Notes: generated by a model from the sequence alone, not told the origin. Positions 16,373 to 19,930 are shown, numbered from the stretch's first letter. The stretch is DNA of 64,000 bases from Macrostomum hystrix (GCA_950097015.1 CATNEN010000011.1:1054001-1118000); one strand, 5' to 3'. Program-made: numbers and translations.

Positions 16373-19311
16373 TTAAGTTGATTGAGCAGTGTCACTAGTC
16401 AGGGACAATTTCATTCTCAGATCATTTAATCTACGCCGAACTTCATCCGGTCCCAGGTGCTGGCAGATCTCGCGAATTGAGGCGCCCTCCGATTGGCCAG
16501 TTAGCAATATTCTGGCCGCTTTAAAGTGCAAAGGCGGCGGCTTTGACTGCAACGGAGCGGCGTCATTGGCTGGCGATGACGTCACAGCCTGCAACAGATC
16601 CAGAGCGGCCAATGCCAAATCAGCGAGAATACGCCGCTTATCTTGACTGTCAGGTGAGAGCGCTGATTTTGAGTTTAATAAATCTCCCAGACTTTGCCAT
16701 ATTATCAGGGGATCTGTTGCTTGAAATAGATAACGATGATTGCCTATATCGGCTAGGGTAACTAGGCGACCTTTTAGTGTTGCTAGGCAACGATGCAAAT
16801 CGGCGTCGCTAGGCGAACTGAAAGGCAGGTAAAGGTGAGAATCAGGTGTGGTCAGAGGAAATCGGAATCGGACGACCCGCTGACTGTGTATTGACAGTTG
16901 TCAAATAGTGCGCCAGTTATATATTAAAAAATAGCTTGAAAAGATCCACAGATCCTCAGATCCTCAGATCCCAGATCCCAGATCCACAGATCCTCAATCC
17001 TCAGATTCTCAGATCCTCAGATCCCAGATCCCCACACCTAACAGCCAGTACACCATATGGTCAATTATTAACGCCACTATCAAATATTCTCCCTGTAATT
17101 GTTTTCCTCCCTCTAAAATCCCAAACTTCTCAACCCGAGTCCAATCAGATCCAAATCAATCAAGCAGTGTACACTCTCACTGTGCCTTGGAGGTTGGCCC
17201 TCAAGGGCGTAAATTGCACGACAAGAGCCCATAGCTACTATTCACGGCTGCGCCCAAATTAATGTGGGCTCGCCACGGAATCGAACTTAGGGACCGTGAT
17301 GCGAGAGGCAAACGCGTTAACCGCTCTGCAACCGAACCCTCACGTAAGCACTCACAAGCCAGCATCGGCCAGTGTCCGCCTGACAGCTCGAATCCCATCG
17401 GATCCAATCGATTCGGGCATTAACGAACGTGTTCCTGCGGAGCGCAGAGCTCCCGGATCCAGTCTGGCATCTCGGCTAGCCAAACAGGCCTCATTAAGTT
17501 CGATAGCTCGCGAGAAAGACTCCAAAGCTAGCCTAGGCGGATCGGTAGTATCTGGCCTACTAGTCCATGTGGCAGAGATTAGCCAATCAAGTACAGCCTC
17601 TGGTAGGTAGCCAATCGATTTCAATTCCCTAATCTCCGTAGCAACAATTGGTCCGGCATTGTTGGAGCCGGAACTGGCACTGATGCCACCCTTTCGTTTG
17701 GACAATTTCGCGCCGTCTCGCCAGTCCAACAACAGAGGCAGGTGAGCGAATAACAGTCCAGCAGACGATACCAGGCCAGATTGCAGCGGCGGCAGTATAG
17801 CATCCAGAGCCAGTCTCAATAATACGTGCTTCGGAGCTGAAGGCAGCCATTCTCGACCGCGAATAACGTGCGTCACACCGGAGCTCCGGTCATCCAGCAC
17901 GCTAGCCAGATGATAGACCGGCCAGCCGTCTGATTTCAATAGTACAGGATCAGCTTCTAGGCCAGAGATGGGAAAAGATAGATCGCCAAGAAGGAGATCG
18001 CGAACTGACACAATTGTCGGGTTGGCACTAGTGGATGGCATGGGCGGTAGTAGGCCAGACACGGCCGAGCGCATATTGAACCGAATCACTGGAGTTGGAT
18101 TGGCTGCAATTTTTTTAGTTTATATAATCCGTATTTATAATGTTTTGTTTTTATAAAATAAACAAATAACAAATACTAATGGTACGTTTCAGTTGCGAGT
18201 TTTTTCACACTGTGTTTGTTTACGCTAGCGCGCCCTCTTATTGTACTTTCTCTCTCTCCCACTATCTGTTCATCTTCCTAGCTAACCTTAACTTCTCTTT
18301 CCTCTCCCTCTTCTCTGATTGGCTAGCCGTTCGCCGCTCTTTCCTAACCCCCTCTTTTTCAGCTCTTACCCTCGGGTTACCCTTCTGCGCCCTTCCTTAT
18401 CTCTTGGTTAATTTGTTTGATTCTCGGCTTTTCGATTCGTTCAGTGCCGCAAGGGCTGGCTCTTACAGCATTTATTTTAATAAGTCACTACAATTATGCC
18501 TACTGTTAGTAGCTGATTTAATTGTCTGCATCCGTTTTATCTCATAATTCTTTAAGCCAAATCTCACCGATCATCAGTTGCTTTCGCTCCTCCTCTGTCA
18601 ACATTCGACACTTGCCGTCGTATCCAGGCGTCATACCAGCCGCCCTCTGCTGTCTACGCAGCAATTGCAGCCTGTGCTCGCTGCAGAAGCACGGATAGGC
18701 CAGTCCGTTGGATACTAGTCTGTCTGCGGCTTCGCGATACACTTCCAGCCTTTGGGACTGCACAATGATCGACTCAGCATTGTCTGGGCTAAGGCCAAGC
18801 CAATGCAACGATTCCAAAATGTCATTGGCTGCGTCTGGTCGGCATCTGGTGGAAACATAGAATCGCTTTAGAGGCACCGTTGCTAAGGGAAAGGTTGATC
18901 TGATTCTATGGGAAGGGAATTTGACTCTCAGGGAAAGGGATCTGTCTATAAGGAAAAAAATGATAAGTCTCGAAGAGAAATGAGATTTGTCTCTAATAAA
19001 ATGGGATCTGTCCCTAAGGAAATGGGATTTGTCCCTAAAGGAAAGGGATCTGTCTTCTCTAAGGATCACCTTTTAGCATCAGTGTCCTCCAATCGCAGCA
19101 GAAACTTGCCACCGTGTCGTCTGGCGAATGCAAAATTCACTAGCGCCGTGCGCGCTCCGCCGACGTGCATTCGGCCGGTTGGCGACGGAGCGAAACGGAC
19201 CACCACAGGCGATGTCGGCGACGAGCTAGATAAACTGCGGCATAGTCGGGCACGACTAGCCGCTGGCAGCAGGCGAAGCTGCTCCAAATGGCGACAACTG
19301 ATTGGCCTGGG
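16373..19311 (-). CDS. EARS2: Mitochondrial glutamyl-tRNA synthetase; start codon not present in the first visible exon
   Basis: [15 protein letters not shown] (HIGH-type motif), [43 protein letters not shown] and KLSKR (KMSKS-type motif). Exons 19070-19311, 18568-18845, 17356-18103 and 16373-16817 are phase-consistent. The N-terminus is R/S/L/A-rich like a mitochondrial presequence. Confidence 0.92.
17180..17340 (-). mobile_element. Short or truncated tRNA-headed SINE related to family B, in an EARS2 intron
   Basis: The reverse strand has a GTTCGATTCC B box and shares ATTAATTT.GG and CGTGCAAT blocks with 13572-13720. Confidence 0.6.
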
Positions 19312-19349
19312 CTGGAAAGGATCGGTGGTGGTGCAATCATTTATGATTA

Positions 19350-19930
19350 CCGATAATAAAATCCGCTCTCGACCTGATAATAACATCCGCTTTCTACCTG
19401 ATAATGACATCCGCTTCCTACCTGATAATGACATCCGCTTCCTACCTGATAATGAAATCCGCTTCCTACCTGATAATGACATCCGCTTTCTACCTGATAA
19501 TGACATCCGCTTCCTACCTGATAATGAAATCCGCTCTCTGCCTGATAATGACATCCGCTCTCTGCCTGATAATGACATCCGCTCTCTGCCTGATAATGAA
19601 ATCCGCTTCCTACCTGACAATGACATCCACTTCCTACCTGATAATGAAATCCACTTCCTACCTGATAATGAAATCCGCTTTCTACCTGATAATGACATCC
19701 GCTCTCTGCCTGATAATTACATCCGCTCTCTGCCTGATAATGACATCCGCTCTCTGCCTGATAATGACATCCGCTTTCTACCTGATAATGAAATCCGCTT
19801 CCTACCTGATAATGACATCCGCTCTCTGTCTGATAATGACATCCGCTCTCTGCCTGATAATGACATCCGCTTTCTACCTGATAATAACATCCGCTCTCTA
19901 CCTGTCTATAAACATCCGCTCCCTACCTGA
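19350..19930. repeat. Minisatellite, 24-bp unit, upstream of EARS2
   Basis: Unit CTGATAATGACATCCGCTTCCTAC. Confidence 0.95.

Follow-up and report, generated by a model that had tools for sequence, protein, structure and literature searches.

All reported flatworm spliced leaders (SLs) end in ATG, which is able to serve as an initiator (Cheng et al. 2006, as quoted in PMC12582326). [quoted passage not shown] In Macrostomum, where ca. 20–30% of the genes are trans-spliced (Wasik 2015; Wudarski 2017; Grudniewska 2018; Ustyantsev & Berezikov 2021, PMC8629364; PMC10468722), the genome paper marks the final ATG of the SL as a translation start codon (PMC10468722). The SL of M. lignano has 35 nt, CGGTCTCTTACTGCGAAGACTCAATTTATTGCATG, and ends in ATG, and its trans-splice acceptors carry the motif [T/C]TNCAG (PMC8629364); M. 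cliftonense and M. hystrix are described as having leaders strongly conserved relative to it (PMC10468722). A flatworm precedent for a role in protein localisation is the thioredoxin glutathione reductase (TGR) of Echinococcus granulosus, whose alternative trans-spliced mRNAs lead to one variant for the mitochondrion and one for the cytosol (Agorio et al., J Biol Chem 2003, according to its title in PMC12582326). Here we analyse a 64,000-nt stretch of DNA from Macrostomum hystrix (GCA_950097015.1, CATNEN010000011.1:1054001-1118000; hereafter the window, with positions counted from its first letter), which carries on its minus strand a four-exon gene, EARS2, for a bacterial-type (mitochondrial) glutamyl-tRNA synthetase (GluRS). 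EARS2 is trans-spliced to the SL at 19312/19311, with the SL AUG in phase, and this AUG very probably acts as codon 1 of a 571-residue protein with a likely mitochondrial presequence.

The transcript evidence comes from four public RNA runs of two studies (X1, X2, X4 and X6), all in the form of Logan contigs, which we compared with positions 16300-19347. The organisms of these runs (A and B) differ from the window by at most one or a few letters over the compared pieces, and do not represent an independent lineage. Two contigs of study P2 (X4 record 15, 1866 nt, and X6 record 20, 1864 nt) contain the four EARS2 exons with zero mismatches, matching 19312-19070, 18845-18568, 18103-17356 and from 16817 to below 16300; the mRNA contig extends ca. 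130 nt into the 3' UTR past the stop codon. All three introns are GT..AG on the minus strand, and their depth in the contigs is zero, indicating that these are RNA-derived (cDNA) assemblies.

Beyond 19312, the X4 and X6 contigs each show 22 extra 5' letters that do not match the genome. Likewise, a 203-nt contig from study P1, obtained under a different organism label (X2 record 14), matches 19123-19312 and is followed by 13 loose letters. These are ATGCAATAAATTG on the plus strand and, in the mRNA sense, the contig reads CAATTTATTGCAT, the G at 19312 and then CCCAGGCCA (CCCAGG). The genomic match therefore ends at 19312 in three contigs from three runs and two studies, while that of the X1 contig ends at 19294, short of the acceptor. 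Positions 19313-19347 have zero contig coverage in all four runs: the depth of the bin 19258-19347 equals the contig depth multiplied by the fraction covered up to the end of the match (19312, or 19294 for X1), and 19313-19347 is therefore uncovered. The 22 overhang letters plus the shared G would make 23 leader letters which, with eight gene-specific ones, add up to 31, the Logan word length; this sum fits because contigs running into a sequence common to thousands of transcripts should stop in this way.

The 14-mer at the EARS2 junction (CAATTTATTGCAT plus G) is the exact 3' end of the M. lignano SL, ...CAATTTATTGCATG (...TTGCATG), an identity that by itself places the window in a Macrostomum flatworm. 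Together, the contig read at the junction and the published leader indicate that the SL of this organism ends in AUG. The contigs match up to 19312, and not to 19311, because a single letter, G, closes both the acceptor AG and the SL ATG. The TTCCAG at this acceptor conforms to the [T/C]TNCAG motif of M. lignano. No copy of the 14-mer was found anywhere in the 64-kb window, allowing up to one mismatch; the leader tail is therefore not a cis exon of the window, which covers ca. 44 kb upstream of EARS2, and we rejected the presence in it of either an SL gene or such an exon.

For ORF analysis, the published leader was joined by script to the four EARS2 exons. The junction ATG/CCC AGG is in phase and opens an uninterrupted ORF of 571 codons, down to the TGA at 16375-16373. 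Read from its 5' end, the mRNA has 32 nt before its first ATG, that of the SL; the next one is out of frame and heads a short ORF (Table 1). The sole in-frame Met of exon 1 is Met49, with no such ATG upstream of the catalytic core. This residue aligns with the Leu of GHLHVGG in the solved structures of Thermotoga GluRS (3akz, 3afh), directly before the first His of the HIGH signature. Since Met49 adjoins HIGH, a start there would deprive the Rossmann fold of its first beta strand and its PSPTG loop, and the protein of the whole presequence; the SL AUG is therefore required for a functional product. No genomic AUG in the mature EARS2 mRNA could yield the complete protein, and it is the functional product, not its targeting alone, that depends on trans-splicing and the SL AUG.

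An earlier, sequence-only reading of this stretch had proposed a phase-0 acceptor (cctttccag/ccc agg cca) with exon 1 starting at 19311, no start codon in EARS2 itself, and exact phasing with the AUG in which flatworm SLs end. The contigs ending at 19312 bear out the acceptor; Met49 is indeed the first in-frame AUG; and the SL tail in the X2 contig, with the 571-codon ORF, confirms both the phase and the AUG end, which matches that of the M. lignano SL. It had also anticipated that the first ATG of the exon, within the HIGH region, would give a crippled enzyme, in agreement with the loss of the first core strand. The findings that it had named as contrary were looked for in the four runs, which contained no cis exon joined at 19311 and no transcript over an alternative ATG at 19386, and where the SL does end in AUG.

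Animal GluRS of the bacterial type is the mitochondrial enzyme, and cytosolic GluRS is of the archaeal/eukaryotic type. Residues 36-81 of exon 1 correspond to positions 2-47 of the Pfam tRNA-synt_1c profile (PF00749, E 3e-21), a catalytic domain that is matched in exons 1-3, and also to positions 2-47 of the NCBIfam profile TIGR00464 (bacterial GluRS). With the exons scored separately, TIGR00464 (gltX_bact) is the top family for exons 1, 2 and 3 (78.5, 84.2 and 88.4 bits, compared with 54, 36 and none for gltX_arch), none of them attaining the whole-protein cut-off of 290 bits. Exon 4 matches PF19269 (Anticodon_2, E 3e-8), the bacterial-type anticodon-binding domain. The assembled protein contains HVGG, as the HIGH signature, at residues 50-53, plus a KMSKS-type KLSKR. 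Exon 1 aligns gap-free to the Thermotoga structures, and the catalytic core begins at residue 36-37.

Residues 1-36, ahead of this core, are likely a mitochondrial presequence, judging from their composition. They include 6 Arg, 8 Ser, 6 Leu and 5 Pro, with a single Glu, no Asp and a net charge of +5. Arg, Ser and Leu add up to 56% of the segment, and Asp plus Glu to 2.8%, versus 10.7% in the remaining protein. There is also an RSL/SS motif, of the R-3 type, at residues 26-30; the R-3 pattern is the cleavage pattern of the matrix processing peptidase. An N-terminus rich in Arg, Ser and Leu with one acidic residue is what the sequence-only reading had described, and the counts agree with it. 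Its further claim, that mitochondrial targeting depends on trans-splicing, stands as to the joining of the EARS2 mRNA to the SL, and widens to the production of any functional enzyme; import itself, through the 36-residue extension, we infer.

Upstream of exon 1, and separated from it by 36 nt (...gtaatcataaatgattgcaccaccaccgatcctttccag), lies a 24-bp minisatellite whose units are CGGATGTCATTATCAGGTAGGAAG and variants, with 18 ATGs and 15 CAGGTAG sites. Nine of the 18 ATGs are in the EARS2 frame, including the one at 19386-19384; this had been singled out as an in-frame start that would add 25 residues, and it does so, although it is one of nine. The EARS2 frame, with 210 open codons, is closed on its upstream side by a TAA at 19719-19717. 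Several frames are open through the minisatellite, on both strands, because its 24-bp (8-codon) period keeps them open mechanically. For instance, two antisense ORFs on the plus strand, at 18908-19930 (340 aa) and 19404-19988 (194 aa), run across exon 1 and the array; they follow mechanically from a repeat period that is a multiple of three, and are not evidence of genes. As part of the outron, the ATGs of the minisatellite are lost on trans-splicing, which agrees with the old idea that leaders clear spurious AUGs from 5' UTRs (cited in PMC8629364). We considered the GGTAG sites of the array as possible cis donors and rejected them: GTAGG and GTAGA are unlike the M. lignano donor motif GT[G/A]AG (PMC8629364), and no such joint is seen in the contigs.

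In the mechanism that we favour, the pre-mRNA of the nuclear EARS2 gene is trans-spliced to the Macrostomum SL at the AG 19313-19312, and the ATG-rich minisatellite outron is discarded. The final AUG of the leader, fused to CCC AGG CCA, is then the first one in the mature mRNA and would act as codon 1 of the protein, of which residues 1 to ca. 36 would serve as a mitochondrial presequence before the catalytic core.

Several points weigh against this mechanism. The letters of the SL were read in the X2 contig (13 plus the shared G), and not in the overhangs of the X4 and X6 contigs. Rare variants drop out of Logan contigs, so that a minor isoform, either cis-spliced or unspliced, may exist. That ribosomes initiate at the SL AUG we infer from necessity, and the context of this AUG (TTGCAUGC) has no purine at -3, being weak by vertebrate rules. 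Finally, the helical hydrophobic moment of the presequence is not above that of shuffles, 1752 of 2000 of which reached it in what is a crude test.

The weak context is also what could allow leaky scanning past the SL AUG, with translation beginning inside exon 1, either at Met49 or at a near-cognate CUG or UUG, and producing a shorter protein; in-frame CTG and TTG are indeed found among codons 10-16. This is nevertheless very unlikely. The SL AUG is the first that a ribosome meets, after 32 nt, and one that bypassed it would reach the out-of-frame AUG at 19243 before Met49. A start at Met49 would lose the conserved strand and loop as well as the targeting extension, and the TTGCAUG terminus has been reported to be functional as an initiator in schistosomes (Cheng 2006, as quoted in PMC12582326).

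We consider it very unlikely that a small upstream cis exon, inside or beyond the minisatellite, gives the real ATG in a significant isoform, with the SL form being one of several. The loss of rare variants from contigs would help to hide it, yet the only acceptor forms listed for the four runs of two studies show the tail of the SL (X2) or, in X4 and X6, a short overhang. Positions 19313-19347 are uncovered in all the runs, and the GTAGG and GTAGA sites of the minisatellite differ from the donor motif of M. lignano. Scarcely credible is the translation of RNA that escaped trans-splicing, from the ATG at 19386 or another one in the repeat, into a protein with a longer N-terminus: the 210 open codons and nine in-frame ATGs would permit it, but no contig covers bases upstream of 19312, unprocessed RNA would initiate mostly out of frame from 18 ATGs in several frames, and the 24-bp period opens frames mechanically on both strands. 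Initiation at an AUG donated by the SL is therefore the reading that we retain.

The coordinates of EARS2 and of the neighbouring features are collected in Table 1.

Table 1. Features of the EARS2 locus and its surroundings in the window.
Feature	Position	Strand	Remarks
AG of the SL trans-splice acceptor	19312-19313	-	cctttccag/ccc agg cca; TTCCAG/CCC
EARS2 exon 1	19311-19070	-	19070 precedes GT; coding from base 1, phase 0; contig match
EARS2 exon 2	18845-18568	-	joint 18845/19070, GT..AG; TIGR00464 profile positions 50-134
EARS2 exon 3	18103-17356	-	joint 18103/18568; KMSKS-type motif KLSKR
EARS2 exon 4, coding part	16817-16373	-	joint 16817/17356; TGA stop 16375-16373; anticodon-binding domain
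Putative presequence, codons 2-36	19207-19311	-	composition, charge, RSL/SS
Next AUG after the SL AUG	19241-19243	-	out of frame, 5-codon ORF
Met49 (19170-19168) plus HVGG, HIGH signature	19156-19170	-	first in-frame AUG of exon 1
24-bp minisatellite, 24.8 copies	19348-19941	-	outron; ends 36 nt before the acceptor
Ubiquitin-conjugating enzyme ORF, intronless	21620-22144	-	UQ_con E 1e-37; own ATG 22113
CAP-Gly protein first exon, own ATG	15259-15546	-	PF01302 E 1e-28; downstream of EARS2 on the same strand, ca. 700 nt from its mRNA end
Minisatellite	12000-12707		31 bp
Minisatellite	14801-14953		60 bp
Minisatellite	15724-16033		30 bp
Minisatellite	16942-17031		38 and 8 bp
Minisatellite	18977-19054		21 bp, EARS2 intron 1
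Minisatellite	20863-21560		18 bp

Upstream of EARS2, on the same strand, lies the gene for a ubiquitin-conjugating enzyme (UQ_con), with its own ATG at 22113 and an acceptor-like site, TTTTTCAG, ca. 50 nt upstream. Its stop (21620) lies 2308 nt from the EARS2 acceptor, a gap that shrinks to 1016 nt without two tandem arrays. By the criterion of Ustyantsev & Berezikov, the downstream gene of a Macrostomum operon is SL trans-spliced, with a repeat-adjusted distance to the upstream gene on the same strand below 1 kb (PMC8629364). If the 3' UTR of UQ_con is counted, the true distance between it and EARS2 is probably just under this threshold; the two genes may thus form an operon, with 1016 nt being borderline for the 1-kb limit.

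Within intron 3 of EARS2 (16818-17355), a segment of ca. 180 bp (17160-17340) draws very many contigs, of 90–95% likeness, in all four runs. Its summed depth is 1469 in X4 and 755 in X6, where EARS2 itself has 26 and 20, and the contigs have loose ends on both sides. The segment is single copy in the window, apart from a weak 36-nt match at 9869-9904, and is matched neither by Rfam nor by tRNA models; a dispersed repeat with high transcription is what it resembles. Searches with Rfam at gathering thresholds and with ARAGORN found no RNA genes in the whole window. The region 12000-21560 also shows an unusual density of minisatellites, with periods of 18–60 bp, all of them intronic or intergenic.

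If annotated by a gene finder that needs a genomic ATG, EARS2 would be cut at Met49 or prolonged into the minisatellite, and its localisation would be mis-called; taking the SL AUG as codon 1 gives the correct protein of 571 aa and its presequence. EARS2 also provides an RNA-supported flatworm example of an initiator borrowed from the leader, in an essential mitochondrial enzyme and in a free-living model genus. A broader possibility, which we regard as very unlikely, is that the nuclear genes behind mitochondrial translation share, as a class, a dependence on the SL AUG, of which EARS2 would be an example. If so, they would acquire a start codon, and with it the initial residue of their presequence, only through trans-splicing, SL supply would gate mitochondrial biogenesis, and an ATG-laden minisatellite outron would act as a fail-safe against making the enzyme from unprocessed RNA.

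As a protein, EARS2 shares with bacterial-type GluRS and animal EARS2 (TIGR00464; PF00749 plus PF19269) the class I core, the HIGH and KMSKS motifs, the anticodon domain and also an N-terminal extension of ca. 36 residues; unlike them, its gene has no encoded start codon. With respect to trans-splicing, the SL tail is identical to that of M. lignano and the acceptor fits the motif described there (PMC8629364). Within their accessible portions, the papers dealing with the Macrostomum SL (PMC8629364, PMC10468722) single out neither EARS2 nor mitochondrial targeting. The nearest counterparts of the start codon are the SL AUG initiators of Schistosoma (Cheng, Cohen, Ndegwa & Davis, J Biol Chem 2006; the slORFs of slORFfinder, PMC9851317), where the same ...TTGCAUG is in phase with an ORF without a usable AUG. 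Here, in contrast, the organism is a free-living Macrostomum, the gene is EARS2 and initiation is deduced from need. TGR of Echinococcus, judging from the title cited above, is likewise a flatworm gene where SL trans-splicing decides on the mitochondrial leader, although it has two isoforms, whereas one form of EARS2 is seen and the enzyme has no cytosolic role. In all, the donation of an initiator AUG by the SL is a mechanism already known in flatworms, and EARS2 adds to it a further case, and no new mechanism.

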